This document shows, piece by piece, positions 5,992 to 62,015 of a DNA stretch of 64,000 nt. The stretch covers positions 1,011,364 through 1,075,363 of the forward strand of contig MCFH01000011.1 of NCBI GenBank assembly GCA_002104945.1, read 5' to 3'. Positions within the stretch are counted from its first letter, which is position 1. Each line of letters starts with the position of its first letter. The translations under genes were made by a program, and so were the position numbers. The notes beneath the pieces are model-generated. The model saw only the letters and a program-made list of their open reading frames with translations. It ran no database searches and was not told the DNA's origin. The stretch is from Piromyces finnis finn (lineage: Eukaryota > Fungi > Neocallimastigomycota).

Positions 5992-6046
5992 TTAATGTGT
6001 AGTAATTTTATTATAATATTTATATTAAATAGTATAATACAATTAC

Positions 6047-18664: not shown

Positions 18665-18671
18665 GTAGTTA

Positions 18672-31971: not shown

Positions 31972-31982
31972 GAAGAGGGGCA

Positions 31983-33757: not shown

Positions 33758-34354
33758 TGATAAGCGTTTAATATTATCTTAATTTATAATTGATTAATTA
33801 TAAAAGTGATAATATTCTTATCAATTAATTAATAAGAGAAAAGTGTTTAAAATTAATTTTTATTATAGAATTATTTGAGATATTCTAATTAAACATAACA
33901 ATTATTAACAAAAATATAAAAGTTATGTTTTAAAACACAATTTTAAAATATATTTTTGAATCAACTTTTTATTTAATAAATTTATTAAAAGTATTGATTG
34001 ATTTTCTTTAAATTAGGAAATAATTACATGTATTTATAATTTTCTTTCTATTTTAACTTTTTAAAATAAAATATTAATATGTTTTAAAATAATAATGAAC
34101 AATAAATAAAAATAAACAATTTATTTTAAAGTAATTAGTTTAATTAATATAACACTATTTAGCTATTTAAAATATTATTTATATTATATTTATTTTATAA
34201 TAAAATATAATTTAAACTGAGTTTTAATATATAATTTTATACTTTTAATTAAATATTTAAATATTATTATGATTTATTATTTATTTTAAGTTGTTTTGAG
34301 GATTAGTTTATATTAATATTATAATTTCATATTTATTAATTTCAATTTATATCA
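33758..34354 (-). repeat. 3' LTR of element E
   Basis: Direct repeat of the reconstructed 5' LTR, with TGAT...ATCA termini. Confidence 0.93.
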
Positions 34355-34367
34355 ATTTCTCCCTTCT

Positions 34368-39390: not shown

Positions 39391-39631
39391 TTTCTGTACT
39401 ATTAGTATATATTATGTTATTTCTTATATATTTTATATTTTATATTTTAAATAATTTCCTATTTTATTAATTATTATTATTATTTTTTTTATTAATTAAT
39501 TATTGTTGATATTTTTGATAATAATTATTGTCTATACTATTATTAAATGATAAGTTTTTATAATTTATTATTATTGTCTTAGAATATAATCGTCAAATAT
39601 TTATATTTTCAATATTATTACTAATTATTAA

Positions 39632-39690
<59 letters not shown>

Positions 39691-40296
39691 TTATTTATCC
39701 TTTTATATTTATTATTATTATTATTATTCAATATTTAGTAACTGTTTGTGATATGTTATTTATTAGTGTCTTAACTATTTTATTTATAATTATATAATTT
39801 CAGTTTATATATATATATTTTATATTTTCTATTATTTTAATATATCTTGCATAATATAATTTATTTTATTGTTAATTTTTTTTAATTTAATTATTATATC
39901 AAATCACGTAACAATTTATATATTTAAAATATTATTTATTATTATTTGTATATTTTATATTTCAATTGTTCAATTAATGTATACAAATCACTTATATAAA
40001 TGTATTTATATAATTCCATATATTTTATTATAATTGTTATTAAATATTATTATTCACTATTAATATATATTTTATTCAATAACATATTTCTTTTTATTTC
40101 TTTTACTATTAATTATTTTTTTTATCACATATATATTTTATTATTTTAACGTGTAATTATTGAATTTTTATGTTAAATTTATTTATTAATTATATAATTT
40201 AATTTATTTTTCAATTTTTAATTTTATGTTGCATTTTTATATATATATATAAATTTATAAAGTAAATATTAATACTTAGCTTCACCGGCCTTTTGA

Positions 40297-40309
40297 GGAT
40301 TCTCCACCA
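40297..40309 (-). promoter_or_regulatory. Primer-binding site, probably tRNA-Ala
   Basis: TGGTGGAGAATCC 4 nt inside the 5' LTR. Confidence 0.85.
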
Positions 40310-40862
40310 AATTTGATAAGCGTTTAATATTATCTTAATTTATAATTGATTAATTATAAAAGTGATAATATTCTTATCAATTAATTAATAAGAGAAAAGT
40401 GTTTAAAATTAATTTTTATTATAGAATTATTTGAGATATTCTAATTAAACATAACAATTATTAACAAAAATATAAAAGTTATGTTTTAAAACACAATTTT
40501 AAAATATATTTTTGAATCAACTTTTTATTTAATAAATTTATTAAAAGTATTGATTGATTTTCTTTAAATTAGGAAATAATTACATGTATTTATAATTTTC
40601 TTTCTATTTTAACTTTTTAAAATAAAATATTAATATGTTTTAAAATAATAATGAACAATAAATAAAAATAAACAATTTATTTTAAAGTAATTAGTTTAAT
40701 TAATATAACACTATTTAGCTATTTAAAATATTATTTATATTATATTTATTTTATAATAAAATATAATTTAAACTGAGTTTTAATATATAATTTTATACTT
40801 TTAATTAAATATTTAAATATTATTATGATTTATTATTTATTTTAAGTTGTTTTGAGGATTAG

Positions 40863-42017
40863 TGTAAAAGTTTTACTAAACTTATAATTTAATATTAAAA
40901 TATCAAATTAAATAAAAGGTTAAAAGATAACTAGGTTAGAAAAAAAATGTTTTATTAAAATAATCTTAATTGATTTATAAATGAATAATTAAATTATATA
41001 TTATGGTTAAAATAATTTCTTTTATTTTATTTAATAATATATTGCTAAAATATAATAATAAGATTATTTAGTAGTAATACTCATTAAGTATTAATTATTA
41101 TTAATAGTTAATAATTTCTAGTTAATAATCTATAGCTAATAATTCATAGTTAATAATTTATAGTTAATAATTTATAGTTAATAATTTAATAATTTATGGT
41201 TAATAATTTTTGGTTAATAATCTTTACAAAGATTTTAATTTCATAAACTATTCTAAACTATTTATACTATTTGTAATTTTACATTTAATAATAAAATAAC
41301 TTTTCAATACATGATTATATTCGTAATATATTTTATAATACTTAAACTAAACTTAAGACTTATTCCTAATTATTAAAAAATAACTATTGTTTATAATATT
41401 CATAATATTAATTATTTCTTAATTATAATATAATTCATTGAATATAATATTAATAATTATAATCCTCTAGTTCAAAGATTATAAATTATGTTATTGAAAT
41501 AATTATTATAAAATAAAGTTAATTAGTTCCGGAAAATAATTTTGATTTAATTAAACAATAATTTTTATACTTTGAGTGAATGATTTATGTTTGATATATC
41601 AGGGGTGATCATTCTCTGAATAAACAATTAATCATTGCTAACAAAATATCTTTAAATTGGAATATCTCGTGAACCAGCAGAGATATTGACCTGATTTTAA
41701 GATATGTTGTTTGTCTCGAGCGTGGCTTTCTAACGAACTTAATTATAACCAAAACATTTTTATTCAAAAATCGTCATTCGTTGAGGAGATACGCGTGTTT
41801 TTTCTTATTCCATTTTAACGATAAGGGTTAAAGTTATTTATTATAAAAATTATTAAGGGTTAAGGTCATATTTTAACCTTTCCTAAATTTTTAAATATTT
41901 CTTAATAAAATTTTATAATTTATTTGAAAATAAAATATTTGTTGATTTTGAATTTTCATAAGTGATTTCACAATTCCAAGTGATCTTGAAATTGTAATTT
42001 CACTAGTATTCGTGACA
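40863..42017 (-). mobile_element. Solo LTR family A inserted in the 5' LTR of E
   Basis: TSD ATTAG. Removing it restores a 597-bp E LTR. Confidence 0.95.
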
Positions 42018-42073
42018 ATTAGTTTATATTAATATTATAATTTCATATTTATTAATTTCAATTTATATCACAA

Positions 42074-43173
42074 TGATGCGTTGACCGATATATTTTTGAA
42101 TAATATAATATTTTTAATAAATAATAAATTCTAATATTTATGATGAAACAATAAATTTAAAATAAAATAAAATATGTTTTATAATTAACAAATAAATCAC
42201 TCAAAAACTCGAAAATAAACTCTTTTTATTATGTTTAAATTATCTCTTTATTATATTTATAATTTATTTATTGTCTATTTATTGTCCGCCCCTTATAAAG
42301 AAGAATTTTATCTTCCTTTTATACATTTTCATTTATTACATGTATTATTATTTTTAACTATTAAATGTTATTATTACTATTGTTATTATTTATTAAAATT
42401 AAAAGAATAAATTAAAATTATGTCTTAGTATTATAAAATATTATAGAATATTACTTATTTGATTTTCTTATTACTTCAAAATGTTTAAAATTAGAAAAAC
42501 TATTATAAATTATCATTAACTATCATTAAATGTATAATACCTTGAATAAAATAATTAAAATTTAAAATTAAAATAATATTAAATTAAAATAAAAATTAAA
42601 ATAAAAATTGAAATAAAATTAATAAAATCAAATATTAAAAGTATCAATTAATATAAACACATTTTATACAGAAACATAAAAGAGTTCTGTATTTTATCTT
42701 TAAAATTGTTATTATTGTTCTATTTCCAGGCTTTAAATTAATCACTTTTAGTAATAATTACTCAGTTATTTATTTGTTAATTTATATATATAAGTTTGAA
42801 AGAATTTCTAAAGAACACTTGGATAAAACACTAGAATTAATAATTTAATGTATATCATTTTATTTTTTTAGTTTATTTATTCATTTTTATTTACTTATTA
42901 TTATTTTATTATTTTAATACATTTTTGGATTGAGTCGTTTTATTTTATTTAATAATTTATTTTATTATTATCTCTATTAAGTCGTTTTTATTCATAATTT
43001 ATTATTTAATAAAGAGAATATTATTTATTTAAAAGAAAGGGTTATATTTCCATAAAATTATTATTTATTCATTTTTAAGGGTTATTATCTTTTATTTTTA
43101 TTATAAGTCGCTATGGGTTAATTCGTGTTTATTCGGCTAGTTTTTATTACGTTTTTATGTGAGTAGCGTATCA
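42074..43173 (-). mobile_element. Solo LTR family C (long variant)
   Basis: TGATGCG...CGTATCA with TSD ACAA. Ends 17 bp upstream of tRNA-Cys. Confidence 0.9.
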
Positions 43174-43190
43174 ACAAAAGTAACGTAAAA

Positions 43191-43262
43191 GGGGTGTTAG
43201 CTCAGCGGTAGAGCAATTGACTGCAGATCAATAGGTCTTCGGTTCAAATCCGGAACGCCCCT
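43191..43262 (+). tRNA. tRNA-Cys(GCA)
   Basis: Cloverleaf with acceptor GGGGTGT/ACGCCCC, anticodon arm ATTGA-CTGCAGA-TCAAT, T-loop TTCAAAT and U73. Confidence 0.96.
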
Positions 43263-44229
43263 TTGTTTATTTTAATTATTATTTTAAAATAAATATTAAC
43301 AAAATTTTAAAAGTAACTATGAAAACTCAATATTATATACATAAATCAAATTGTAGAAGGTTTATTATATTTTCTATAAGAGAAATAGATTTACTATGTT
43401 ATTTTACATAAAAAGTATTACAATAATAAATAAATAATAACCACTCATATAAGCTAATATTGTAAATAATGTTTTTTATTAAAATTTATAAATATATTAG
43501 TAATTAAATAATGAATAAAACTAGTTATATATAATAATAAGTGTTTGTTCGCCTTATTTCTCTTATTACTATAAACTATTTTTGACTATTTTAAATATAA
43601 TAATTCTTTATTATTAATTTTTTATTATATTTATTATATTATTTTACTTTAATACTAACACTAAAATATTAGTGTTTGTTTACCTATGCTTTCACTTATA
43701 ATATCATTAATCTGTATAAATTATTATTGATTATTATTTTATAATATTATTTACTATAATAATACATGTCCATTATTTAAATATAAAATTAAATATTATA
43801 TCATATTATAAATTAAACATAAATTCATGGAAATTTTTTTTTGAGTAAAACTTATTAATTCAATATTAAATATTAAATTATAATTAAAAGACAAGTAAAA
43901 ATTAAACTAAGTCAAGAAAATGTTTTATTAGAAATTTTATTAACAAATAAAAAAAATAATTCTTAAATTATATAATATAATATTATATAACTTAATAATA
44001 AAATTTGATAATAATCTTAAATTCATAAAATTAATTCTTTGTAAAGATTATTATTAACTAAACCATTTATATTCTTTGTAAAATTTAATAATAAACTAAG
44101 TTTCAGTGAGCGTCGAGGCTGAAGATTCAGTATGACAAACCAGAAGGGTCAAAACCACCTAGCAATAGGAAAGAGCCAACGTTTCTCTAAGAACCACCAT
44201 TTGGGGCCTACTCTGATTGATGGAGGAAA

Positions 44230-44934
44230 TGTAATTTTCAATACATGATTTATATTCATAATATACTTAATAATATTAAACTAAACATAAGAATAACAAT
44301 AATATATATATTTATTAACTAAATATCAATAATATTAATACTAATTATTATATAATTATTATATAAATAATTATATGTAGGTAAAATAACATAATCCTTT
44401 AATTCAAAGATTATGAAATATTTATTGAAGTATTAAAAATAAAGTTATTATCTTCGAATTATTATAATTTAATTTATTTTATTTTAATTTTACAGAATGA
44501 TTTATGATTGATAATTAGGGGTGGGGTGATCATTTTCTGAATTATCAATAATCATTTGTATTTAAAAATCTTTAAATGTTGATATCTTGCGAACCAGCAA
44601 AGATATTATGCTCGTATTAACATATGTTGTTGTTCTTGAGCATGGCTATCTAATGAATGTTGTTTCATCAAACATTATTATTCAAAAACCGTAATTCGTT
44701 ACCGAGATACGATTGTTTTTCGTTATTGAATTATGACCTTAAGGGTTAAAAGTGTTTATAATAATTTTTGAAAGGGTTAAAGTCATGTTACTTAGAATTT
44801 TTAATATCTATAATATAATATCTATAATATTATTTTATATCTTTTAAAATTTGATAATAATTAATTTTTTACTATTTTAAACGTAATTTCACAATTTCAA
44901 GATCACTTGAAATTGCAAATTCCACTAGTATCCT
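44230..44934 (-). repeat. Diverged, truncated A-like LTR
   Basis: Collinear similarity to family A U3. Both termini are lost. Confidence 0.75.
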
Positions 44935-45314
44935 TGATATAACGAAGAAGAAGTATTTTGAAAAGTTATGTTATAACAACCAATTCGTTATCAAAAATGA
45001 TACTTTAACTGATATATTTTTGAATAATATAATATTTTTAATAAATAATAAATTCTAATATTTATGATGAAACAATAAATTTAAAATAAAATAGAATATG
45101 TTTTATAATTAACAAATAAATCTCTTTAAAACTCAAAATAAACTCTTTAATTATGTTTTAGATTATCTTTTTATTATATTTTTATTATTTATTTAAATAA
45201 TAAAAATTATTTAATTTATAGGTGTTAACTTTTACACCTAAATGGTTTAGTTCTATTTTTAGTAACAGTCATTATCATTAATTAAATTAATATAATTAAA
45301 ATTCCTATTGATAA

Positions 45315-46049
45315 ATTATTCTAAACTATTTATACTATTTGTAATTTTACATTTAATAATAAAATAACTTTTAATACATGATTCTTAAGACTTAATCTTA
45401 ATTATTAAGTTTAAGTATTGTTAATAATATTTATAATATTACTTATTATTTAATTCTAATATAATTCATTGAATATAATATTAATAATTATAATCTTTTA
45501 ATTCAAAGATTTTAAGTTATGTTATTGAAATAATTATTATAAAATAAAGTTAATTAATTCCGGAAAATAATTTTAATTTAATTAAAACAATAATTTATAT
45601 CCTTTTGGGTGAATGATTTATGTTCAATACATCAGAGGTGATCATTCTCTGAATAAACAATTAATCATTACTAACAAAATATCTTTAAATTGGAATATCT
45701 TGTGAACCAGCAGAGATATTGACCTGATTTTAATATATGTTGCTCATCTCGAGTGTGGCTTTCTAACGAGACCATAATTTCCCAAAACACAATTATCCTA
45801 AATCGCCATTCGTTAAGGAGATACGCGTGTTTTTCCTTATTTAATTTTGACGATAAGGGTTAAAGTTATTTGTTATAAAATTATTAAGGGTTAAGGTCAT
45901 ATCTCAACCTTTTATAAATTTTTTAAATATTTCTTAATATAATTTTATAATTTATTTGAAAATAAAATATTATTGATTTTGAAATTTTATAAGTAATTTC
46001 ACAATTTCAAGTGATCTTGAAATTGTAGATTTCACTAGTATTTGTGACA
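45315..46049 (-). mobile_element. Partial LTR family A (U3 end intact)
   Basis: Ends GTGACA, followed by TCGTG. The other end is fused to a family B fragment (about 45200-45312). Confidence 0.85.
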
Positions 46050-46054
46050 TCGTG

Positions 46055-46867
46055 TGTTAAGTTTTGGGATTCGGTTATGCGACCAGGTCAGAATGTTATT
46101 AATTATATAGTAAATATGTTTTTTAAGAAATTAAATTTAAATATAAAATAACACTTTAAACTTCCAAATGAAAAATTAATATTTATTTTTTAGAATAACC
46201 TTTTATAAAATTTTATTTATTTAGTAATAATAATATAAATGATAATATATTTAATAACTATATAATTAAGATTATAACTATAATCTTTACAAAGAAAATC
46301 GAATTCAAATCATTCTATTTTATATTCTTTGTTCAGATTATTTAATTGATAAAAATAAAGTATTACATGTAATATATTAATAACATAATAAGATTGTTTG
46401 TTTGTTTGTTTGTTTTGTCATGACATAAAAATAAAATTAACATATGATTAATCATTTAAACACTTGATCCATACTTGATATCATATTAATTTTAATTTAC
46501 TTATTAAAATCTTCAAATGACCATATCTTTCTTAAATGACCAGTTAGAAGGACCGCGATTGTACCAAAATATAGCTTTTTCCTTAAGCTTTCTAATAAAC
46601 CTAGTTTCATAGCCGTAGTACTTACAGCTGTAGCGCTCGTTTTTGGCGAGCTATGCCTTGTTTCGTGCTTGTTTATTTTTGGTTAAGGGTTATAGTGTAT
46701 TGATATTAAATTTTTGAAATCATAACCCTTTCACTGAATCAAAATTTAAAAGGTGACTTTTAAAGGTGTTTTAAAATAATTATTGAAATTATTTAATTAT
46801 AATTATTATGCTTAATTAATTATAGATATCATCTAAATTTGTTTTAAATCCAGTTAATATCTTCACA
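46055..46867 (-). mobile_element. Solo LTR family B (internal deletion)
   Basis: TSD TCGTG. Inserted in the terminal part of an LTR C (remnant at 46868-46913). Confidence 0.9.
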
Positions 46868-46920
46868 TCGTGTTTATTCAGTTAGTTTTTATTATATTTT
46901 TATATGAGTATCATGTTGAA

Positions 46921-47495
46921 TGATACGTTATAAAATAAAATATCATAATATTATTATTTATTTTGAGGTTGTGGTAATAAGGAATATTGCTGAAATAATA
47001 TATTCCAGTTATTAATAATTATGTGATATAGTTATTATGTATTTATTTACTTATTTATTATTATTTATTATTATTATTATTATAAACAAAATAAGCCTTT
47101 TATTATTATTAAATATTTATCTTTATTAAAATATATTATAATTAGTATTTTTACATTTATTTATTATTAATAATACATATTTAAAATAACTATATTTCCT
47201 ATATAAATATACTACTTATTCACTATTAATATTACTAAACTATTACTAAATTTCTCATTTTATTATATCTTATTATCTTTGGAACTTAATTACAAAATCA
47301 AGAACATCATTTTAATTATTTAATCATTAATTATATTTATATTAGTACATATTAAATATTTTTTTTTTAATTAATTTCATATTAATTAATTTCATTATTT
47401 ATTAAAGTTATTATTAATTTATTATTATCTTAACCCTTATATGAATTAACCTGGAATTTTTACCAAAAGTAGTATTTTCTGTTCGTCACGTATCA
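46921..47495 (-). mobile_element. Solo LTR family K
   Basis: TGATACG...CGTATCA with 4-bp TSD TGAA. Ends 15 bp upstream of tRNA-Ser. Confidence 0.85.
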
Positions 47496-47510
47496 TGAAA
47501 AATTAATAAA

Positions 47511-47592
47511 GTCAGTTTGTCCGAGTGGTTAAGGAGTCAGACTTGAAATCTGATGGGCTCTGCCCGCGCAGGTTCAAACCCTGCAGCTGACG
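47511..47592 (+). tRNA. tRNA-Ser(UGA)
   Basis: Acceptor GTCAGTT/AGCTGAC, anticodon arm TCAGA-CTTGAAA-TCTGA, long variable arm GGGC-TCT-GCCC, G73, then a TTTT terminator. Confidence 0.95.
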
Positions 47593-48509
47593 TTTTAATT
47601 AATACTTTTTAATAATTACAATTAAAAAAATGATAAGAAAAAAGATTTTAAAAACTAGGTTTAAAAACTACAAAATATATAATAAATAATTTTTAAGCCT
47701 AAAAGCAAAATTTAAAATTGTCATAATAATAAAATAAATTTAAATAAATTTTTTACTAATAAAAAAAAAATAATAAAGCACTTAATATTTAATGGCAAAA
47801 TATAAATAAAAAATATTCCAACTAATTCCTTTTTTATTTAAGTAGTTCATATATAAATATTTTTCTTATTATAAAACAAGAGAATTTTGAAATTTTAAAA
47901 TACTTTTATAATCAAGTTAATTTTTAGTTCTATTCATAATTACTTTTAATAACACAAAGTTTTTATTATTAATTAATTATTAAAATTTATATAATTAATT
48001 ATTAGTTTTATTTTAAATTACTATATATAATTATTATTGTATTGCAAAGTATATATATCATTAATTAACAACTTTAGTAAATAATAATTATAAAAAAAAA
48101 AAAAACAATAATAAGTTATTTGTTATTTTTATAACTTATTTGTAATGTTATATTACTTAATTTTATTATGCATTTTTTTTATTTATGATTATATTGAATC
48201 ATAATTTTGATAACATAATTTTTATAATAGACTTATCTATAAAAATAGTTACATAATTATAAAGGGATAAACGATAATAATAAAAAGTTGATTTATTAAG
48301 TGACTAATTTTTTAATCATTATTTTTTGTATATTTTATGTTATTTTTATCAAAATGGAGAAAGTGCAGAATTCTATATTATTTATTGATAATAAAAAGAA
48401 AAGAAAATTTTAAATTCCATATTTGGTAAATATTAATATAATCAAAAAAATATAATATTAAGATTTTTTTTGTACCACACTAACTTTGATAAAAATTTAT
48501 TTATCAAAT

Positions 48510-48620
48510 TTATATATAAAATAAAATTGTAATTATTATTATATAATAAAAAATATACTAACTTTATATATATAAAATAAAATTGTAATTATTATTATAT
48601 AATAAAAAATATACTAACTT
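48510..48620. repeat. Tandem duplication, unit about 57 bp
   Basis: TATATATAAAATAAAATTGTAATTATTATTATATAATAAAAAATATACTAACT occurs twice. Confidence 0.75.
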
Positions 48621-49657
48621 AGATTATTATAGAGTCACAACTAAAAAAAATACAATTACATTATCAATTTACTACATTATTCTACAAATCTATCAATTGA
48701 TGTATTTGTATTAAATATTTACAAGCCTATATACAAGCCACAAATTGTATATAAGAAAGAAAATTTTTCATGTATTTTAATTTTTTTATAGCCTCCTATA
48801 TGAATAATTTTAATAAACTTTAAATATTATAAAACAATACAATATTCGTTTATATTATAATATTGATAAAAATAGTTGTTACCTTTTTTACTTAGTACCG
48901 AAAATCTTTGAGCGTATTTGTTTTAAGAAATTCAAAAAATTTATTAAATACTAATTGCTATGAAAATATCCAAAAAAAAAAAAAAAACATTATAATTTAC
49001 TTTTTATCTTATTAATCACAAAAAAAAAAGACAAATAATAAAAAGATAAAAAAAAACTATGCTTTTAAAAACTTGCTCTAAAAAATATATTTTAGAATTA
49101 AATTTTATTATATATTTTATTTTATATAATAAATATAAATAATGTATATAATATATAATAAATATATTATGTAAATATATTGCATTACATATATTCAAAA
49201 AAAATTTTTATTTTATTCTTTTATCAGGGAAAAAAAATATTTATCTTTTTTTTTTTTTAGATTAAAATATTAAAAATTTAAATAGTAATTTTACTAATTA
49301 TAATTTAAAAAAGATATAAAAACATCACAAAACCTTTTATTTTTATCATTCAAAAATAAAACATTTATTAAATAAATAAATAAATAAATAAATAAAAAAT
49401 AAAGCAATTTAATTTATATATTATTATTAATGATATAATAAAATATAAATTAATAATTAATTCAGAAAATTATTTAATAAAAATAATCGTATATAATATG
49501 CTTTAGAATAATAATAATAGTAATATATAAAGTATAATATACAAAAATAGAAATAGATATACAAAAATTATAAAAATTTACTAAAATATTAAACATATAA
49601 TAAAAAAAATAAAATAAACCAAATTAATTAAAATTCATTTATAATTAATAATAAAAG

Positions 49658-51013
49658 ATGACTGACGAAATTCAATTTAACACTGGAGATGTTGGTTTTA
49701 TAATCATTTGTGCAGGTTTAGTATGGTTTATGACTCCTGGTTTAGGCTATTTCTATTCTGGTATGGCACGTTCAAAATCTGCTCTTTCTTTAATCATGGT
49801 TTGTTTCCTTGCTATTGCTGTTGTTTCAATACAATGGTGGATGTTTGGTTTCTCATTAACTTTCAGTGAAACTTCTGGTAATCCATTAATTGGTAATTTC
49901 AAGTATGCATTTGGTCATCATATGAACGGTCCAAAGGATGTATTACCAATCGTTCCTAATTTACCTATTTCAGTTTTTTCTATTTTTCAAATGATGTTTG
50001 CTATTATTACTGCTGGTCTTATTTTTGGTGGTCCAGCTGAACGTATGAGGGTTTTACCAACTATTGTTTTTATTTTCATTTGGACAACTGTTGTTTATGA
50101 TCCAATTGCTTATTGGTCTTGGTCTGAAAATGGTTGGCTTAGAAAGTTAGGATCTCTTGATTTTGCTGGTGGTACACCTGTTCATATTGCTTCTGGTGCT
50201 GCTGGTTTAGCTTATTCCATTGTTCTCGGTAAACGTCAAGGTTTAGGAAAGGAAAAATTCAAACCACATAATCTTTCTAATGTTTTCTTAGGTACTGCTT
50301 TACTTTGGTTTGGTTGGTTCGGTTTTAATGCTGGTTCAGCTCTTGGTGCCAATGCTCGTGCTGGTATGGCTCTCTTAACTACCAATTTATCTACTGCTGT
50401 TGGCGGTATTACTTGGGTTCTTATTGATTATCATCGTGAAAAAAAACTTTCTGCACTTGGTTTTTGCTCTGGTGCTGTTGCAGGATTAGTTGGTATCACT
50501 CCAGGTGCTGGTTTTGTTTCACCATGTCCAGCTGCTGCTATTGGCTTAATTACCGCAACTGTTTGTAACTTTGGTTGTAAAATTAAAGGTAAGATCGGTA
50601 TTGATGATGCTCTTGATGTTTTTGGTGTTCACTGCTTAGGTGGTATTACTGGAAATCTTTTAACAGGTATCTTTGCTCAAAAATATATTCAAGATTTAGA
50701 TGGAGGTTACTCATATAAGGAACAAGGTGGTTGGTTAGATGGTTCTTGGAATCAACTTCTTTATCAATTTATTGGTTGTGTTGCTGGTTTCTTCTGGAGT
50801 TTCTGCATTACTTTTTGTCTTCTTAAAGTCTTAGATTATATACCAGGATTAAACATACGTGTTGAACGTGAAGCTGAAGTATACGGTATTGATCAATCAG
50901 AAATGGGTGAAGTTGCATATGATTATGTTTCTTACTCTCAAGCTGATATAATGAATATGGCTTCTGCTGTTTCCATAACAAATAATTCTAGTAACATCAA
51001 TGTTAAAGAGTAA
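49658..51013 (+). CDS. MEP: Ammonium transporter (Amt/MEP family), intronless, 451 aa
   Basis: Motifs MTPGLGYFYSG, DFAGGTPVH, WFGWFGFNAGS, GLVGITP and DVFGVH, with many hydrophobic helices. Confidence 0.96.
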   Translation: MTDEIQFNTGDVGFIIICAGLVWFMTPGLGYFYSGMARSKSALSLIMVCFLAIAVVSIQWWMFGFSLTFSETSGNPLIGNFKYAFGHHMNGPKDVLPIVPNLPISVFSIFQMMFAIITAGLIFGGPAERMRVLPTIVFIFIWTTVVYDPIAYWSWSENGWLRKLGSLDFAGGTPVHIASGAAGLAYSIVLGKRQGLGKEKFKPHNLSNVFLGTALLWFGWFGFNAGSALGANARAGMALLTTNLSTAVGGITWVLIDYHREKKLSALGFCSGAVAGLVGITPGAGFVSPCPAAAIGLITATVCNFGCKIKGKIGIDDALDVFGVHCLGGITGNLLTGIFAQKYIQDLDGGYSYKEQGGWLDGSWNQLLYQFIGCVAGFFWSFCITFCLLKVLDYIPGLNIRVEREAEVYGIDQSEMGEVAYDYVSYSQADIMNMASAVSITNNSSNINVKE

Positions 51014-51664
51014 TAAAATTGGCGATATTAACGCTTCTAAAGCATAAAATCAATTAATTTCAATATCAACCTAATATATATAATATAAAGAAAAATCATA
51101 AAAAAAAGTATAATACTAACAATAATAATAATAAACTATCAGAATTTTAAAATAATTTATTAACATTTAAATATAGAATAAATAATAAAAAGTTAAAATA
51201 AAATAATAATAATAATAATTTATTTATAAAAAATGAAAAAAATGAAAAAAAAAAAAAAAAGAAATGAAAAATTCATAATTTTAAATATCCTAAAACTATT
51301 AAAAAAAATGTAATGTATAAAAACTATCAACATAATTTTTTTATAATATTTATTAAAACAAATATAGAAAAATCAAAAAAAATCAAATATATATACATAT
51401 ACATATTTCCTTTATTGAGTGAAAAAGGAGATAGGTATATATATAATATTAATATGTAGAATAATATTTATCTTTTATATAATCTATTGAAGTTTTGTGA
51501 TAATTAAAAGTAATTAACATAAAACTTTTATTTATTTTAATATTAATAAAAATATCTAAAACCCAAAAAAGTTGAATTTGATTTATGTATATAATATTGA
51601 GTTTTCATAGTTTCTTTTAAAATTTTGTTAATATTTATTTTAAAATAATAATTAAAATAAATAA

Positions 51665-51736
51665 AGGGGCGTTCCGGATTTGAACCGAAGACCTATTGAT
51701 CTGCAGTCAATTGCTCTACCGCTGAGCTAACACCCC
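51665..51736 (-). tRNA. tRNA-Cys(GCA)
   Basis: Identical to 43191-43262 on the opposite strand. Confidence 0.96.
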
Positions 51737-51802
51737 TTTTACGTTATTTTTGATAAATAATGAAATTAATAAATATAAAATTATTATTATACCTGATTTT
51801 TA

Positions 51803-52901
51803 TGTCACGAATACTAGTGAAATTACAATTTCAAGATCACTTGGAATTGTGAAATCACTTATGAAAATTCAAAATCAACAAATATTTTATTTTCAAATAA
51901 ATTATAAAATTTTATTAAGAAATATTTAAAAATTTAGAAAAGGTTAAAATATGACCTTAACCCTTAATAATTTTTATAATAAATAACTTTAACCCTTATC
52001 GTTAAAATGGAATAAGGAAAAACACGCGTATCTCCTCAACGAATGACGATTTTTGAATAAAAATATTTTGGTTATAATTACGTTCGTTAGAAAGCCACGC
52101 TCGAGACAAACAACATATCTTAAAATCAGGTCAATATCTCTGCTGGTTCACGAGATATTCCAATTTAAAGATATTTTGTTAGCAATGATTAATTGTTTAT
52201 TCAGAGAATGATCACCCCTGATATATCAAACATAAATCATTCACTCAAAGTATAAAAAATTATTGTTTAATTAAATTAAAATTATTTTCCGGAACTAATT
52301 AACTTTATTTTATAATAATTATTTCAACAACATAATTTATAATCTTTGAACTAGAGGATTATAATTATTAATATTATATTCAATGAATTATATTATAATT
52401 AAGAAATAATTAATATTATGAATATTATAAACAATAGTTATTTTTTAATAATTAGGAATAAGTCTTAAGTTTAGTTTAAGTATTATAAAATATATTATGA
52501 ATATAATCATGTATTGAAAAGTTATTTTATTATTAAATGTAAAATTACAAATAGTATAAATAGTTTAGAATAGTTTATGAAATTAAAATCTTTGTAAAGA
52601 TTATTAACCAAAAATTATTAACTATAAATTATTAACTAAAGATTATTAACTATAGATTATTAACTATTAATAATAATTAATACTTAATGAGTATTACTAT
52701 TAAATAATCTTATTATTATATATATTCTTTAAATAAAATAAAAAGGAATTATTTTAACTATAATACATAATTTAATTATTCATTTATAAATCAATTAAGA
52801 TTATTTTAATAAAACATTTTTTTTCTAACCTAGTTATCTTTTAACCTTTTATTTAATTTGATATTTTAATATTAAATTATAAGTTTAGTAAAACTTTTAC
52901 A
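51803..52901 (+). mobile_element. LTR family A, array copy 1
   Basis: 1099 bp, flanked by TTTTA on both sides. Confidence 0.95.
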
Positions 52902-52906
52902 TTTTA

Positions 52907-54005
52907 TGTCACGAATACTAGTGAAAATACAATTTCAAGATCACTTGGAATTGTGAAATCACTTATGAAAATTCAAAATCAACAAATATTTTATTTTCAA
53001 ATAAATTATAAAATTTTATTAAGAAATATTTAAAAATTTAGAAAAGGTTAAAATATGACCTTAACCCTTAATAATTTTTATAATAAATAACTTTAACCCT
53101 TATCGTTAAAATGGAATAAGGAAAAACACGCGTATCTCCTCAACGAATGACGATTTTTGAATAAAAATATTTTGGTTATAATTACGTTCGTTAGAAAGCC
53201 ACGCTCGAGACAAACAACATATCTTAAAATCAGGTCAATATCTCTGCTGGTTCACGAGATATTCCAATTTAAAGATATTTTGTTAGCAATGATTAATTGT
53301 TTATTCAGAGAATGATCACCCCTGATATATCAAACATAAATCATTCACTCAAAGTATAAAAAATTATTGTTTAATTAAATTAAAATTATTTTCCGGAACT
53401 AATTAACTTTATTTTATAATAATTATTTCAACAACATAATTTATAATCTTTGAACTAGAGGATTATAATTATTAATATTATATTCAATGAATTATATTAT
53501 AATTAAGAAATAATTAATATTATGAATATTATAAACAATAGTTATTTTTTAATAATTAGGAATAAGTCTTAAGTTTAGTTTAAGTATTATAAAATATATT
53601 ATGAATATAATCATGTATTGAAAAGTTATTTTATTATTAAATGTAAAATTACAAATAGTATAAATAGTTTAGAATAGTTTATGAAATTAAAATCTTTGTA
53701 AAGATTATTAACCAAAAATTATTAACTATAAATTATTAACTAAAGATTATTAACTATAGATTATTAACTATTAATAATAATTAATACTTAATGAGTATTA
53801 CTATTAAATAATCTTATTATTATATATATTCTTTAAATAAAATAAAAAGGAATTATTTTAACTATAATACATAATTTAATTATTCATTTATAAATCAATT
53901 AAGATTATTTTAATAAAACATTTTTTTTCTAACCTAGTTATCTTTTAACCTTTTATTTAATTTGATATTTTAATATTAAATTATAAGTTTAGTAAAACTT
54001 TTACA
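52907..54005 (+). mobile_element. LTR family A, array copy 2
   Basis: 1099 bp, near-identical to copy 1, flanked by TTTTA. Confidence 0.95.
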
Positions 54006-54010
54006 TTTTA

Positions 54011-55141
54011 TGTCACGAATACTAGTGAAAATACAATTTCAAGATCACTTGGAATTGTGAAATCACTTATGAAAATTCAAAATCAACAAATATTTTATTT
54101 TCAAATAAATTATAAAATTTTATTAAGAAATATTTAAAAATTTAGAAAAGGTTAAAATATGACCTTAACCCTTAATAATTTTTATAATAAATAACTTTAA
54201 CCCTTATCGTTAAAATGGAATAAGGAAAAACACGCGTATCTCCTCAACGAATGACGATTTTTGAATAAAAATATTTTGGTTATAATTACGTTCGTTAGAA
54301 AGCCACGCTCGAGACAAACAACATATCTTAAAATCAGGTCAATATCTCTGCTGGTTCACGAGATATTCCAATTTAAAGATATTTTGTTAGCAATGATTAA
54401 TTGTTTATTCAGAGAATGATCACCCCTGATATATCAAACATAAATCATTCACTCAAAGTATAAAAAATTATTGTTTAATTAAATTAAAATTATTTTCCGG
54501 AACTAATTAACTTTATTTTATAATAATTATTTCAACAACATAATTTATAATCTTTGAACTAGAGGATTATAATTATTAATATTATATTCAATGAATTATA
54601 TTATAATTAAGAAATAATTAATATTATGAATATTATAAACAATAGTTATTTTTTAATAATTAGGAATAAGTCTTAAGTTTAGTTTAAGTATTATAAAATA
54701 TATTATGAATATAATCATGTATTGAAAAGTTATTTTATTATTAAATGTAAAATTGCAAATAGTATAAATAGTTTAGAATAGTTTATGAAATTAAAATCTT
54801 TGTAAAGATTATTAACCAAAAATTATTAACCATAAATTATTAAATTATTAACTATAAATTATTAACTAAAGATTATTAACTATAAATTATTAACTATTAA
54901 TAATAATTAATACTTAATGAGTATTACTACTAAATAATCTTATTATTATATATTTTAGCAATATATCATTAAATAAAATAAAAGAAATTATTTTAACCAT
55001 AATATATAATTTAATTATTCATTTATAAATCAATTAAGATTATTTTAATAAAACATTTTTTTTTCTAACCTAGTTATCTCTTAACCTTTTATTTAATTTG
55101 ATATTTTAATATTAAATTATAAGTTTAGTAAAACTTTTACA
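54011..55141 (+). mobile_element. LTR family A, array copy 3 (different R/U5)
   Basis: 1131 bp. The 3' part resembles 40863-42017. Flanked by TTTTA. Confidence 0.95.
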
Positions 55142-55146
55142 TTTTA

Positions 55147-56278
55147 TGTGAAGATATTAACTGGATTTAAAACAAATTCAGATAATATCTATAATTAATT
55201 AAACATAATAATTATAATTAAATAATTTCAATAATTATTTTAAAACACTTTTAAAAGTCACCTTTTAAATTTTGATTCAGTGAAAGGGTTACGATTTCCA
55301 AAATTTAATATCAATACACTATAACCCTTAACCAAAAATAAGCAAGTACGAAATAAGGTGTAACTCGCCAAAAACGATCGCTACGGCTGTAAGTGCTACG
55401 GTGATGAAACTAGGTTTATTGGAAAGCTTAGGAAGAAAGCTACAATTTGGTACAATCGCGGTCCTTCTAACTGATCATTTAAGGAAGTTATGATCATTTA
55501 AAGATTTTATTAGGTAAATTAAAATCAATATGATATCAAGTATGGATCATAAATATTTCTTATGACTTGATGAAATTAAAAATATATCAATAGGAATTTT
55601 AGTTATATTAATTTAATTAATGATAACGATTGTTACTAAAAATAGAACTAGACCCATTTAGGTGTAACAGTTAACACCTATAAATTAAATAATCTTAATT
55701 ATTATAAAATAGGTTAACGGCAAGTTTTATTAGAAATAATTTTGAAAATAATAATTATTTAATTATAACAAATATGTTATGGTAATATCAATTAATAATG
55801 ATGAATTATTAATTGAATAGTTTTTATAATTACTAATTAGGATCAACTGTTTAAATGATTAATCATATGTTTATTTTATTTTATGTCATGACAAACAAAC
55901 AAACAAACAAACCATCTTATTACTTATTTAATTATATTACTAATATATTACATGTAATACTTTATTCTTATTAATATCAATTTAATAATCTGAACAAAGA
56001 ATATAAAAGAGAATGAATTGAATTCGATTTTAATTCTTTGTAAAGATTATAGTTATAATCTTAATTATATAGTTACTTATAATATCATTTATATTATTAT
56101 TATTAAATAAATAAAAAATTTATAAAAAGTTATTTTAAAGTAAATATAAATTTTTCATTTTTCATTTGGGAGTTTAAGGTGTTATTTTATAATTAAATTT
56201 AATTTCTTAAAAAACATTTTTACTATATAATTAATAACATTCTGACCTGGCCGCATAACCAAACCCAAAAACTTAACA
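55147..56278 (+). mobile_element. Solo LTR family B in the array
   Basis: TGTGAAG...CTTAACA flanked by TTTTA (55142-55146, 56279-56283). Confidence 0.93.
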
Positions 56279-57036
56279 TTTTAAGTTAACCCTAAAAGTA
56301 ACTTAAAACAAGTTATAGTTTAATTAAGTACTTTACCAAAATTCTTAAATAAAATTAATCCTAAACACTGCATATATTTTGATTATTGAAAGAAAATAAT
56401 AAACTTTAATTAATCGAGATCAAAATATATAACTTTTGTTAAATTAATTGTTAAATTAAATATTTAATAACTTCGTTAGTAAATTACACTTTAAAAGTAA
56501 ACAAATATAATAATTCATGTTATAAAATAATATAATTAAACACCTTTATTAAAACATTAAAAATAATTATTACTTTAATTAATTGTAAAATAAACAACTT
56601 TTTATATTCTTTAACTTTTAATTATTTCTTTTATTGTTATTTCTAATTACTTTTATTGTAAATAGTTATTAATTTTATTGTTTTAATGTAAATAGTTTAA
56701 ATTTAAAAGAAAATATAAATACATGTAAATATTCTTATTTTAATCATTATTATTATTATTAATAAAGAAATATTATATAGTTAGATTAATATTTTATAAT
56801 TTTAATAATCACTTTTAAATTAAATAAATAAAATTTTAAATAATTAAATATTAGAAAAACGAGTGTTTCTAATAAAACAATTTAGTGTTTTAATAAAACA
56901 ATTTTATTAATTTTTATAAAAACAATTTTAAATTCTAATCCATATAATTTATATAGTTATAATCAAAGATATAATATAATAATCACTTTTTGAAGTAAAT
57001 TCAAAATTAAGATTATTATCAAATTATATCATTTAT

Positions 57037-58081
57037 TGATACGCTACTCATATAAAAACATAATAAAAACTAACTGAATAAATACGACTTAACCCATAGT
57101 GACTTATAATAAAAATAAATGATAATAACCCTTTAAAATGAATGAATAATAATTTTATGAAAATATAACCCTTTCTTAAATAAATAATATTCTCTTTATT
57201 ATAAATTCTGAGTAAAAACGACTTAATGGCGATGATAATAAAATAAATTATTAAATAAAATAAAACGACTTAATCCAGAAATATATTAAAATAATAAAAT
57301 AGTAATAAATAAATAAAAATGAATAAATAAACTAAAAATAAAAATGGTATACATCAAATTATTAATTCTAGTGTTTTATCCAAGTGTTCCTTATAAATTC
57401 TTTTAAATTTATATATATAAATTAATAAATAAATAATTGAGTAATTATTACTAAAAGTGATAAGCTTAAAACCTGGAAATAAAACAATAATAACAATTTT
57501 AAAGATAAAATACAGAACTCTTTTATGTTTCTGTATAAAATGAGTGTTTATAATAATTGATACTTTTAATATTTTAATTTTGTTATAATTTTATTTTAAT
57601 TTTATTTTAATTTTAAATTTTAATTATTTTATTCAAGGTATTATACATTTAATAATTTAATGGTATTTAATGATAGTTTATAATAATTTTTAGTTTTAAA
57701 CATTTAAGTAAAAGAAGATCAAATAAATAATATTTTATAATACTAAAGTATAATTTTAATTTATTCTTTTTAATTTTAATAAAGAATAACAATAGGAATA
57801 TTTCATAATTAAAAATAATAATACATGTAATAAATGAAAATGTATAAAAGAAAGATAAATTTCTCCTTTAATAAGGTGAATAATAAATAAATAATAAAAA
57901 GATAATAAAAAGATAATCTAAAACATAAGTAAAGAGTCTATTTTGAGTTTTAAAGAGATTTATTTGTTAATTATAAAACATATTCTATTTTATTTTAAAT
58001 TTATTGTTTCATCATAAATACTAGAATTTATTATTTATTAAAAATATTATATTATTCAAAAATATATCAGTTAAAGTATCA
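57037..58081 (+). mobile_element. LTR family C (long variant)
   Basis: TGATACG...GTATCA. Flanks TTAT and TTTT differ at one base. Confidence 0.8.
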
Positions 58082-58144
58082 TTTTTGATAACGAATTGGT
58101 TGTTATAACATAACTTTTCAAAATACTTCTTCTTCGTTATATCA

Positions 58145-58849
58145 AGGATACTAGTGGAATTTGCAATTTCAAGTGATCTTGAAATTGTGAAATTACGTTT
58201 AAAATAGTAAAAAATTAATTATTATCAAATTTTAAAAGATATAAAATTATATTATAGATATTATATTATAGATATTTAAAATTCTAAGTAACATGACTTT
58301 AACCCTTTCAAAAATTATTATAAACACTTTTAACCCTTAAGGTCATAATTCAATAACGAAAAACAATCGTATCTCGGTAACGAATTACGGTTTTTGAATA
58401 ATAATGTTTGATGAAACAACATTCATTAGATAGCCATGCTCAAGAACAACAACATATGTTAATACGAGCATAATATCTTTGCTGGTTCGCAAGATATCAA
58501 CATTTAAAGATTTTTAAATACAAATGATTATTGATAATTCAGAAAATGATCACCCCACCCCTAATTATCAATCATAAATCATTCTGTAAAATTAAAATAA
58601 AATAAATTAAATTATAATAATTCGAAGATAATAACTTTATTTTTAATACTTCAATAAATATTTCATAATCTTTGAATTAAAGGATTATGTTATTTTACCT
58701 ACATATAATTATTTATATAATAATTATATAATAATTAGTATTAATATTATTGATATTTAGTTAATAAATATATATATTATTGTTATTCTTATGTTTAGTT
58801 TAATATTATTAAGTATATTATGAATATAAATCATGTATTGAAAATTACA
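58145..58849 (+). repeat. Diverged, truncated A-like LTR (duplicate of 44230-44934)
   Basis: Reverse-complement identity with 44230-44934. Confidence 0.75.
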
Positions 58850-59811
58850 TTTCCTCCATCAATCAGAGTAGGCCCCAAATGGTGGTTCTTAGAGAAACGT
58901 TGGCTCTTTCCTATTGCTAGGTGGTTTTGACCCTTCTGGTTTGTCATACTGAATCTTCAGCCTCGACGCTCACTGAAACTTAGTTTATTATTAAATTTTA
59001 CAAAGAATATAAATGGTTTAGTTAATAATAATCTTTACAAAGAATTAATTTTATGAATTTAAGATTATTATCAAATTTTATTATTAAGTTATATAATATT
59101 ATATTATATAATTTAAGAATTATTTTTTTTATTTGTTAATAAAATTTCTAATAAAACATTTTCTTGACTTAGTTTAATTTTTACTTGTCTTTTAATTATA
59201 ATTTAATATTTAATATTTAATAAGTTTTACTCAAAAAAATTTTCCATGAATTTATGTTTAATTTATAATATGATATAATATTTAATTTTATATTTAAATA
59301 ATGGACATGTATTATTATAGTAAATAATATTATAAAATAATAATCAATAATAATTTATATAGATTAATGATATTATAAGTGAAAGCATAGGTAAACAAAC
59401 ACTAATATTTTAGTGTTAGTATTAAAGTAAAATAATATAATAAATATAATAAAAAATTAATAATAAAGAATTATTATATTTAAAATAGTCAAAAATAGTT
59501 TATAGTAATAAGAGAAATAAGGCGAACAAACACTTATTATTATATATAACTAGTTTTATTCATTATTTAATTACTAATATATTTATAAATTTTAATAAAA
59601 AACATTATTTACAATATTAGCTTATATGAGTGGTTATTATTTATTTATTATTGTAATACTTTTTATGTAAAATAACATAGTAAATCTATTTCTCTTATAG
59701 AAAATATAATAAACCTTCTACAATTTGATTTATGTATATAATATTGAGTTTTCATAGTTACTTTTAAAATTTTGTTAATATTTATTTTAAAATAATAATT
59801 AAAATAAACAA

Positions 59812-59883
59812 AGGGGCGTTCCGGATTTGAACCGAAGACCTATTGATCTGCAGTCAATTGCTCTACCGCTGAGCTAACACCCC
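59812..59883 (-). tRNA. tRNA-Cys(GCA)
   Basis: Identical to the other two copies. Confidence 0.96.
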
Positions 59884-61035
59884 TTTTACGTTACTTTTGT
59901 TGTTAAGGAATGAACATAAATAGTTGAATTAGCTAGAATTTTAGGAATTTGTCACGAATACTAGTGAAATTACAATTTCAAGATCACTTGGAATTGTGAA
60001 ATCACTTATGAAAATTCAAAATCAACAAATATTTTATTTTCAAATAAATTATAAAATTTTATTAAGAAATATTTAAAAATTTAGAAAAGGTTAAAATATG
60101 ACCTTAACCCTTAATAATTTTTATAATAAATAACTTTAACCCTTATCGTTAAAATGGAATAAGAAAAAAACACGCGTATCTCCTCAACGAATGACGATTT
60201 TTGAATAAAAATATTTTGGTTATAATTACGTTCGTTAGAAAGCCACGCTCGAGACAAACAACATATCTTAAAATCATGTCAATATCTCTGCTGGTTCACG
60301 AGATATTCCAATTTAAAGATATTTTGTTAGCAATGATTAATTGTTTATTCAGAGAATGATCACCCCTGATATATCAAACATAAATCATTCACTCAAAGTA
60401 TAAAAAATTATTGTTTAATTAAATTAAAATTATTTTCCGGAACTAATTAACTTTATTTTATAATAATTATTTCAATAACATAATTTATAATCTTTGAACT
60501 AGAGGATTATAATTATTAATATTATATTCAATGAATTATATTATAATTAAGAAATAATTAATATTATGAATATTATAAACAATAGTTATTTTTTAATAAT
60601 TAGGAATAAGTCTTAAGTTTAGTTTAAGTATTATAAAATATATTATGAATATAATCATGTATTGAAAAGTTATTTTATTATTAAATGTAAAATTACAAAT
60701 AGTATAAATAGTTTAGAATAGTTTTATGAATTAAATCTTTGTAAAGATTATTAACTTATTAATACTTAATAAGTATTACTATTAAATAATCTTATTATTA
60801 TATATATTCTTTAAATAAAATAAAAAGGAATTATTTTAACTATAATACATAATTTAATTATTCATTTATAAATCAATTAAGATTATTTTAATAAAACATT
60901 TTTTTTCTAACCTAGTTATCTTTTAACCTTTTATTTAATTTAATATTTTAATATTAAATTATAAGTTTAGTAAAACTTTTACAATAATCTTTACCGCGTT
61001 TTTTACCATAACTACCTTAGGAAAAAACTTAATTT

Positions 61036-61103
<68 letters not shown>

Positions 61104-61106
<3 letters not shown>

Positions 61107-62015
61107 ACTCAACCAACACCTAAACCAGTTCAACAATTCCTAAAGCCTCAAGATTTAGAAGAATTTAAGAAAAATCTTTGTGGTGAATTAGACAAGTATA
61201 TCACTCAACAATTGGATAAAAATACCACCTCCTTGTTAGAACGTATGGATGCTATGTTAAAGGAACTTAAGAGTCGTGCTAATTATACTGAAACCGAGGA
61301 ATCTTCTACCGATTATGATGAAGATCATGATGTTATAATGCGTAATAGAACCTATCCTATCAAACAAGTACCAGATCCAGGATTCTTTACTGGTGATACT
61401 ACTCAGACTGAGTTATTCTGCGAACTCTGCCAAGCTACCTTTAAAACTCCACCTAACAATCAACTATCTGAAGAAGTAAAAATTAACTTTGTTGTTGTTA
61501 GATTACGTGATTCTGCCAGAACTTGGTATCATATTAAATATAAAGATGGTATTACTCCTATGACTATGAACGAACTATTAAGTGAATTAAACAAAGCTTT
61601 TTCAAATGTTACCAGTACCAAATTAGCCATGATTCAATTAATAGAATTAAGACAAGCTTATGGAAAAGTGAACGATTATATTAACAAATTTAGAGATTTA
61701 AGTCGTTGTTTAGAGATAGATGACATTAGTCTTTCACTAATATTTTTAAATGGTTTACATCCAAAATATAAGAATGAAATTAAGAAAGCTGATATTTTAC
61801 CTAACACTTTAAGTGAAATGGTTACAAAGTGTATAATTTTTGAAAATTCTCTTGCTACTAATAATAAATTAAATATCAATAATAATAATAATAAAAATCA
61901 ACATTACAATAAGAGAAACAATAGGAAATTCAATAAGAATAAAACCCATTATCAAAATTCAAACAATAATAATAATTATGTCAATAAAGTTCAAAAGATG
62001 AACTCAAAAAACTAA
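61104..62015 (+). CDS. gag: Family A Gag, 303 aa, no CCHC knuckle
   Basis: Retrotransposon-gag-like core (PDPGFFTGD...LRDSARTWY...YINKFRDL), with position between the LTR and pol. Confidence 0.85.

Follow-up and report, generated by a model that had tools for sequence, protein, structure and literature searches.

In the fungus Piromyces finnis, a 64-kb stretch of contig MCFH01000011.1 (positions 1,011,364 to 1,075,363 of the forward strand, finishing at the contig end and referred to here as the window) carries four tRNA genes, each with the ends of LTR (long terminal repeat) retrotransposons lying upstream of it. These elements integrate position-specifically at two discrete distances upstream of tRNA genes, with target site duplications (TSDs) of lineage-specific length, a bias in orientation and recent activity. 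Judging from their predicted proteins they fall into two clades of the Ty3/gypsy group, and it is probable that both clades integrate at these fixed positions throughout the genome, presumably by means of a tether to the RNA polymerase III (Pol III) initiation complex. The genome is very AT-rich, with a GC content of 14–36% across the window, and the searches described here extended over 56,455,805 bases in 232 contigs.

The position closest to the genes, tier 1, at about 11–18 bp, is used by the families C (12–18 bp from the mature 5' end of the tRNA), E (13 and 16 bp), E2 (14 bp) and K (15 bp), with 4-bp TSDs for E and E2. Tier 2 comprises family A, the diverged A2 and A3 related to it, and family B, which insert 63–69 bp upstream, most often at 66 bp, and generate a 5-bp TSD. 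A first-pass annotation of the window had identified four tRNA 5' ends (43191, 47511, 51736 and 59883), LTRs at 14–18 bp and 64–69 bp from them, and TSDs of 4 bp in tier 1 and 5 bp in tier 2. The gene ends are correct, since ARAGORN and Rfam agree on them, and all of the distances and both TSD lengths were reproduced by reading the sequence at the four loci. Its description of tier 1 as consisting of TGAT..ATCA elements applies to E, C and K, while many other tier-1 tails end in ...TTACA, ...TAACA or ...ACCA.

The same two distances recur across the genome. A search was made with a pattern consisting of an LTR terminal word, 0–400 free bases and the tRNA B box GGTTCRANTCC, such that the match coordinates yield the distance; the B box alone produced 327 genome matches compared with 160 for a reversed control. 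As measured on fetched loci, the B box is offset by 49–52 nt from the start of ordinary tRNAs and by 60 nt from that of tRNAs for Ser. For the tRNA-facing end of A there were 33 matches, all with gaps of 109–127 and 29 of them with gaps of 114–119, and none for the reversed control. Given the B-box offset, gaps of 114–119 correspond to 63–68 bp from the mature 5' end. Some 19 different spacers are represented among the matches, and the adjoining tRNAs are those for Cys, Ser, Gly and Arg, among others. If gaps were uniform over 0–400, the chance of a single A match falling within a 21-nt window would be about 0.05 and, over some 19 independent loci, chance is thereby excluded.

For B, 22 distinct tRNA-facing ends were found, 16 with gaps of 114–118, three with gaps of 127–129, and one each at 149 and 216; the single readable tRNA in the 127–129 group, that of a Ser-GCT gene, has a long variable arm. 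All 11 of the tRNA-facing C ends had spacers of 12–18 bp, with none elsewhere within the 0–400 range, and the single match for E lay at 13 bp. Thus peaks near 14–18 bp and 64–69 bp, which the first-pass annotation had named as the test of its proposal, appear genome-wide. Moreover, at locus L021 A lies 66 bp from a tRNA-Ser(TGA) gene in which the B box is shifted inwards by 10 nt, and short and long variable arms make no difference to the distance between the LTR and the tRNA 5' end. This independence from variable-arm length places the ruler on the A-box and start-site side of the gene, and not at the B box.

Samples drawn in other ways gave the same picture. Among 17 tRNA loci taken in contig order, irrespective of repeats, a recognisable LTR end lay 11–17 bp from the tRNA at no fewer than 10 (at least 10/17, with one at 22 bp) and a tier-2 end lay at 63–66 bp at three, and a BLAST-based count on this sample showed boundaries of repeat sequence clustering at 10–22 and 61–67 bp upstream. 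At a tRNA-Pro gene, B sits 64 bp away in unique DNA, and tier 2 therefore needs no tier-1 LTR. Internal copies of A that are 99–100% identical number at least 23 in the genome. Eight full-length A copies were read in an LTR-centred sample, and in all eight the 5' LTR faces a target. Four of them are 65–67 bp away from tRNAs for Cys, Arg, Ala and Cys; in two more, a later insertion of C type or TGAT type has come between the copy and its target; and the remaining two face an LTR carrying A-box-like and B-box-like motifs. At locus L008, A is found 56 nt past the 3' end of a full-length E2, the layout expected if A entered at 66 bp and E2 then inserted at its usual 14 bp.

The earlier proposal that the elements point away from the tRNA stands as a strong bias and not as an absolute rule. 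The 5' LTR adjoins the tRNA in both E and E2, with polarity taken from full-length copies. Just four ends in the genome search have A with its 3' end towards a tRNA, compared with some 19 separate loci where the orientation is the usual one, and two of these four are near-identical copies (contigs C15 and C78) of one solo LTR located between divergent tRNAs. For the opposite end of C, the search returned no genome matches facing a tRNA, the two C end-words being about equally frequent locally.

The order of events at the four window loci was rebuilt from sequence reading and from self-comparison of the window. The first target, a tRNA-Cys(GCA) gene on the forward strand (43191–43262; Rfam RF00005, 67.9 bits), is preceded by a full-length tier-1 element E on the reverse strand (33758–42070), flanked by the TSD CAAA. 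Its TGAT..ATCA LTRs, at 33758–34355 and at 40314–40863 plus 42018–42070, are 100% identical over 550 bp and enclose gag (38242–39390), pol (35222–38230) and integrase (34368–35360) coding parts, with Pfam matches to reverse transcriptase (RT), RNase H and integrase; a sequence resembling a TGG-type primer binding site adjoins the 5' LTR. The outer end of this LTR, at 42070, was 16 bp from the tRNA prior to the insertion of a solo C LTR of 1100 bp (42074–43173, TGAT..ATCA, TSD ACAA), which now stands 17 bp from the gene and is assigned to the reverse strand by the homology of its termini to those of E. Nested in the E 5' LTR is a reverse-strand solo LTR of A (40864–42017, TSD ATTAG), a tier-2 insertion that lay 53 + 16 = 69 bp from the tRNA when it occurred. 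On the far side of E is the tail of an older K-like tier-1 LTR (33600–33755, strand unassigned), originally 14 bp from the tRNA and displaced by E; the same tail is also found 15 bp from a tRNA-Cys in locus L017. An older tier-2 layer is represented by A2, a diverged A-like LTR detected by sequence reading and self-comparison (44235–44939, reverse strand), beyond which lie a 54-nt tier-1 LTR tail ending in ATCA (to 44993) and a later C-like LTR starting at 44998.

At the second target, a forward-strand tRNA-Ser(TGA) gene (47511–47592), all of the elements lie on the reverse strand. Closest to the gene is a solo K LTR of 565 bp (46931–47495, TGAT..ATCA, TSD TGAA) at 15 bp. With K removed, a 46-nt tail of a C-type LTR (46878–46923) lies 18 bp from the tRNA and a solo B LTR of 823 bp (46055–46877, TGT..ACA, TSD TCGTG) lies at 46 + 18 = 64 bp. 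The next tier-2 LTR is an A copy of which 666 bp are kept (45384–46049), and its TGT end at 46049 abuts the same TCGTG.

The third target is a tRNA-Cys(GCA) gene on the reverse strand (51665–51736), and here the elements lie on the forward strand. The LTR that had been described as E-like, 14 bp from this gene, is indeed a tier-1 LTR, here named E2 and 800 bp in length, of which the first 52 bp (51751–51802) have been severed from the distal 748 bp (56284–57031) by an array of tier-2 LTRs. E2 copies are uninterrupted at loci L008, L010, L012, L017 and L018, and the array is thus an insertion into the E2 LTR. Two sequence ends, ...ATTATATCA and ...CATTATTTATCA, had been considered as termini of different families, and this was rejected on finding that they are the two ends of the one E2 LTR. 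The array begins 66 bp from the tRNA with three tandem solo LTRs of A (51803–52901, 52907–54005 and 54011–55141), separated by the 5-bp TTTTA, of which the first two are near-identical (100% as rounded) and the third is about 96% identical to the first. They are followed, at the same target site, by a B LTR (55147–56278) with TTTTA at 55142–55146 and 56279–56283. Over the whole array (51798–56283) TTTTA is present at all five junctions, and comparable arrays of five A LTRs occur on contig C135; these structures arose either by repeated hits at the same nucleotide or by growth of an LTR dimer through unequal crossing-over. Further out is a C LTR (57037–58081), an earlier tier-1 occupant whose original distance from the tRNA is reconstructed as about 15 bp.

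At the fourth target, also a tRNA-Cys(GCA) gene on the reverse strand (59812–59883), the 66-bp spacer (59884–59949, reverse strand) consists of 17 bp of native flank and a 49-nt tier-1 LTR tail ending in ...TTAACA, which recurs at C186:313021. An A element on the forward strand follows directly, 66 bp from the tRNA and transcribed away from it (59950–64000), with a 5' LTR (59950–60983), gag (61104–62015) and then pol, which is cut by the contig end.

The three Cys loci are paralogous, with gene and flanks in common, and their spacers and TSDs differ, which identifies the insertions there as independent events. Self-comparison of the window also aligned 43154–45195, at 99% identity, with the reverse complement of 57884–59920. 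This 2-kb inverted duplication carries the tRNA-Cys, its 3' flank and the old A2 LTR and terminates within a C-type LTR; it looks like the product of ectopic recombination between LTRs that joined two stacks. Elsewhere, a unit of tRNA-Cys, 65-bp spacer and A end repeats every ~5570 bp (C74:925–17767, C79:834226–845504 and C47), and these recurring units on small contigs are tandem repeats of a tRNA-plus-element module. Between two of the retrotransposon stacks of the window lies an intact ammonium transporter gene (49658–51013; Pfam PF00909, E = 2e-126), about 650 bp from the 3' end of the tRNA-Cys at 51736.

That two different lineages are involved, as had been claimed from the LTRs, is borne out at the protein level. 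Pfam searches of A, E and CHV, the latter being one of two chromoviruses of the window (CHV and F, see below), revealed the gypsy order of protease, RT, RNase H and integrase in elements flanked by LTRs and a short TSD, and the RTs of A and E both match the Ty3 RT (4ol8) at ~1e-85. Pol identity is 50–62% among A, CHV and F and 54–82% among E, E2 and an element at window positions 5–2445, whereas between the two clades identity falls to 36–40% for RT and 24–28% for integrase. On these sequence comparisons, A (tier 2) and E/E2 (tier 1) are assigned to different clades of Ty3/gypsy. A distant relative of one integrase (41%) was found in Orpinomyces. At its 3' terminus B is similar to A and, by this resemblance, may be mobilised by an A-type integrase.

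The C-terminal regions of the two integrases differ. That of E showed no match to the Pfam Chromo domain and ends about 35 residues past its SH3 domain, without a chromodomain, and the E and E2 integrases score higher against PFV integrase than against that of Ty3. The A integrase likewise yielded no match to Pfam Chromo (PF00385) at E<0.01, whereas CHV and F do match. However, its last ~60 residues, following the SH3 domain, align in register with canonical chromodomains, and the aromatic-cage positions Y, W, Y are replaced by A, I/V and N/K, such that the cage which reads methylated histone H3 is lost. The cage-less pattern is kept in relatives of the A integrase that are 57–83% identical (ENA and JGI metagenome records). 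An AlphaFold2 model of the A integrase shows three strands and a helix at residues 241–300 (pLDDT ~80), and its best structural match was to the Ty3 integrase chains, vestigial chromodomain included, in the TFIIIB complex, 7q5b. A belongs to a chromovirus-like clade, and alignment and model together give it a predicted C-terminus that is chromodomain-shaped and devoid of the aromatic cage.

Over the stretches fetched, and not from single copies read end to end, the A pol frame is open in nine of ten copies; it extends over ~1240 codons, as measured on one merged copy. The tenth copy has one extra A in an A run, which breaks the frame, and the idea that an integrase frame break is a trait of the family was rejected on the grounds that the longer run, by one base, occurs in that copy only. 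In the A element of the window, a run of ~65 A's (61040–61105) lies past the 5' LTR and before the gag start codon, with no TGG-type primer binding site after the LTR. In copies at L033/L034 (C187:264163–271557), about 925 bp between the pol stop and the 3' LTR (element positions ~6109–7033) contain no long open reading frame. A search of recorded contigs with A gag gave no match.

Among known systems, Ty3 of yeast inserts ~15 bp upstream of the mature 5' end of tRNAs through TFIIIB (PMC5006619, PMC8632968), with its SH3 domain and vestigial chromodomain binding TBP and Brf1 and thereby fixing the site (PMC8632968). Tier 1 uses this Ty3-like position, as do Tj1 of S. japonicus, Tyl3, Tyl6 and Ylt1 of Yarrowia, and beta and Tca8 of Candida. 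The integrase layout of Ty3, with catalytic core, SH3 domain and vestigial chromodomain, is that of A (PMC8632968; PMC5911963). However, A uses a site ~50 bp further upstream, while E and E2 occupy the Ty3-like position without a chromodomain-like module, and orientation is strongly biased in this fungus in contrast to Ty3 and its relatives. The dictyostelid element DGLT-A, also of the Ty3/gypsy group, inserts ~15 bp (13–33 bp) upstream of tRNA genes, like tier 1, and it reached this site independently, using the TFIIIC subunit Tfc4 and not TFIIIB (PMC6101501). By analogy, DGLT-A is a plausible model for the chromodomain-less tier-1 clade, although it belongs to another host kingdom, shows both orientations of insertion and lacks active full-length copies in D. 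discoideum (PMC5911963), whereas E, C and A in this fungus all have identical LTR pairs.

For tier 2, the closest parallels in position are the dictyostelid elements TRE5-A and NLTR-B, which insert at discrete sites 40–54 and 39–64 bp upstream with their 5' ends facing the tRNA, and which share the tRNA flank with a family inserting at ~15 bp (PMC5006619, PMC5911963). They are non-LTR elements that use an endonuclease and target-primed reverse transcription, while tier 2 involves an integrase, 5-bp TSDs and distances of 63–69 bp; A, with its LTRs, integrase and 5-bp TSDs, is not a TRE5-like non-LTR element with an AP endonuclease. Ty1 of S. cerevisiae is an LTR element that inserts upstream of Pol III start sites through contact of its integrase with the Pol III machinery, but it is of copia type and spreads over a window of ~1 kb with a nucleosomal periodicity of ~80 bp, whereas tier 2 elements have the gypsy order and a single sharp peak at 63–69 bp within 0–400 bp. 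Skipper-2 of dictyostelids is, like A, a chromovirus relative with a diverged chromodomain that targets tRNA genes and not heterochromatin (PMC5006619), but it inserts downstream of them and A upstream. In the table of a 2018 review, the only positions given for LTR elements are the start site, the downstream flank (Skipper-2) and a broad periodic window (Ty1), and discrete sites at 40–64 bp upstream are those of the non-LTR elements TRE5 and NLTR-B (PMC5911963). The first-pass annotation knew of no description of such partitioning in this kind of genome; the sharing out of tRNA flanks among families is known from dictyostelids (PMC5006619), and what stands is that our literature search yielded no LTR element described at a sharp site ~65 bp upstream of tRNA genes. 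A search of the full-text literature also found no tRNA targeting in Neocallimastigomycota or other early-diverging fungi. A site such as the one at ~66 bp is, as far as this literature shows, known from non-LTR elements alone.

A tethering mechanism would account for the two positions as follows. Both intasomes would be held by the Pol III initiation complex. Tier 1, the position of which approximates the expected Pol III start, would lie at the downstream edge of TFIIIB, as for Ty3, or be reached via TFIIIC, as for DGLT-A. With a start site ~10–15 bp upstream of the mature end, tier 2, ~50 bp further out, would be located just beyond the upstream edge of TFIIIB, and the cage-less chromodomain of A is a candidate for its tether. 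Each new tier-1 insertion comes to lie between the previous LTR and the tRNA, shifting older copies outward, and tier-2 elements then enter whatever is located 66 bp upstream at the time, usually the last ~50 nt of a tier-1 LTR; the two processes together generate the layered stacks. Going further, and with somewhat less than even confidence, we suggest that the chromodomain of the A lineage became a cage-less docking module that binds the TFIIIB-DNA complex on its upstream face, or else a TFIIIC subunit there, allowing an integrase-based element to occupy a position otherwise known from dictyostelid non-LTR elements, while an unrelated chromodomain-less gypsy clade takes the Ty3 position, such that two intasomes divide the opposite edges of one Pol III complex between them.

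Several points weigh against this reading, at least in its simplest form. The tether itself is a step that we infer. The genome-wide counts cover those tRNAs whose B box fits GGTTCRANTCC and those LTR copies with exact end-words, and many of the matches are duplicated loci, the arrays on C47, C74 and C79 contributing 12 of the 33 for A. A is reversed at two or three loci, and E2 is reversed, at 22 bp, at one Arg-TCT locus, a single event that has since been copied to several loci. Family assignments also differ in depth, with C and K placed in tier 1 and B in tier 2 by their LTR termini only, and with a protein-level tier-1 clade that consists of E and E2, the ACA-ending tier-1 LTRs falling outside that assignment. 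The TCGTG site has been hit by B, by B again and by an A3 copy in three C LTRs, and this suggests that, inside the permitted interval, there is some preference for local sequence. Finally, Rfam detects no Pol III gene near two groups of LTRs of the window, at 5261–7138 (A, C) and 17572–19668 (A, B).

Tier 2 could alternatively be set by chromatin and not by direct contact with TFIIIB or TFIIIC, with the A/B intasome preferring the border of the first nucleosome to be positioned upstream of the tRNA, much as Ty1 uses nucleosomal DNA. We consider this main rival unlikely. A distance of ~65 bp exceeds the yeast TFIIIB footprint, which covers -15 to -32 from the start site (PMC8632968), and the A integrase derives from chromodomain-bearing elements, both of which would suit a nucleosomal target. 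However, the site is sharp, varying mostly within 2 bp across tRNA species and spacers, there is a single peak and no ~80-bp periodicity out to 400 bp, unlike Ty1, and the aromatic cage required for reading histone methylation has been lost in A. It is very improbable that the pattern results from near-random insertion followed by selection, or from segmental duplication of tRNA-plus-LTR modules. Duplications do abound, as seen in the 99% identity of 43154–45195 and 57884–59920 and in the arrays that repeat one locus 12 times, but they would not yield ~19 distinct spacers and several TSDs at different tRNA species (the distinct TSDs being those read at the window loci), nor different families striking the same nucleotide repeatedly. 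Furthermore, the site is where every copy with identical LTRs lies, and such copies are too recent to have been sorted by selection; the base-pair precision is beyond what selection gives. That tier-2 elements recognise a sequence in tier-1 LTR tails and not the tRNA gene is barely credible, since, even if most 66-bp spacers consist of the last 46–54 nt of a tier-1 LTR plus 11–18 bp and the TCGTG site in C was used three times, the tails come from at least 10 unrelated LTR families, the sum of tail and spacer is constant while its parts vary (46+18, 51+12, 51+16), and B is found in unique DNA at 64 bp from a tRNA-Pro.

The two groups of LTRs lying away from a detectable Pol III gene, C with an A-like LTR at 5261–7138 and A with B at 17572–19668, have the layout seen at tRNA genes, including a 51-nt tail and 4-bp and 5-bp TSDs, and their target has either been lost or is of an unfamiliar kind. 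The full-length chromovirus CHV is located nearby (20405–26925), with LTRs of 439 bp (20405–20843 and 26487–26925) that are 100% identical, a TSD of GTTAG and a 1479-aa gag-pol that includes a canonical chromodomain. An A-box-like hairpin, GTCTTAGTGGTTAG..., is present at the start of the CHV LTR, and CHV-related LTRs at two other loci (L028:1–378 and L031:1–391) also bear a B-box-like GGTTCGA or GTTCGAA motif. At both of these loci A lies 45 nt upstream of the CHV-related LTR, which corresponds to 65–66 bp from the would-be tRNA start. Rfam at E<=1 detected no tRNA-like match in the LTRs bearing such motifs, and the notion that a CHV-type LTR acts as a Pol III promoter or tRNA mimic is speculative and only a lead; an alternative is that a real tRNA was separated from A by an insertion that came later. 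CHV is nested in the 5' LTR of the second chromovirus, F (19676–32758), the flanks of which share no TSD and which is probably a recombinant; the sequence past 32758 has the appearance of protein-coding sequence.

Targeting of tRNA genes is a textbook safe-site strategy of mobile elements and, to our knowledge, its molecular basis has been worked out only for Ty1 and Ty3 of yeast, and partly for Dictyostelium. The present fungus provides a third, independent tRNA-targeting system, in which several families look recently active and two sites are sharp to the base pair. The layered stacks upstream of its tRNA genes record the order of insertions and also explain the assembly breaks that occur there, the contig of the window itself ending inside an A element. 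Tier 2 is of most interest, combining a Ty3-like integrase layout with integration ~50 bp further upstream, and a comparison of A with Ty3 would reveal the way in which the distance from tether to cut is set by a small C-terminal module. The tRNA flanks are, in addition, possible safe landing sites in organisms still without genetic tools.

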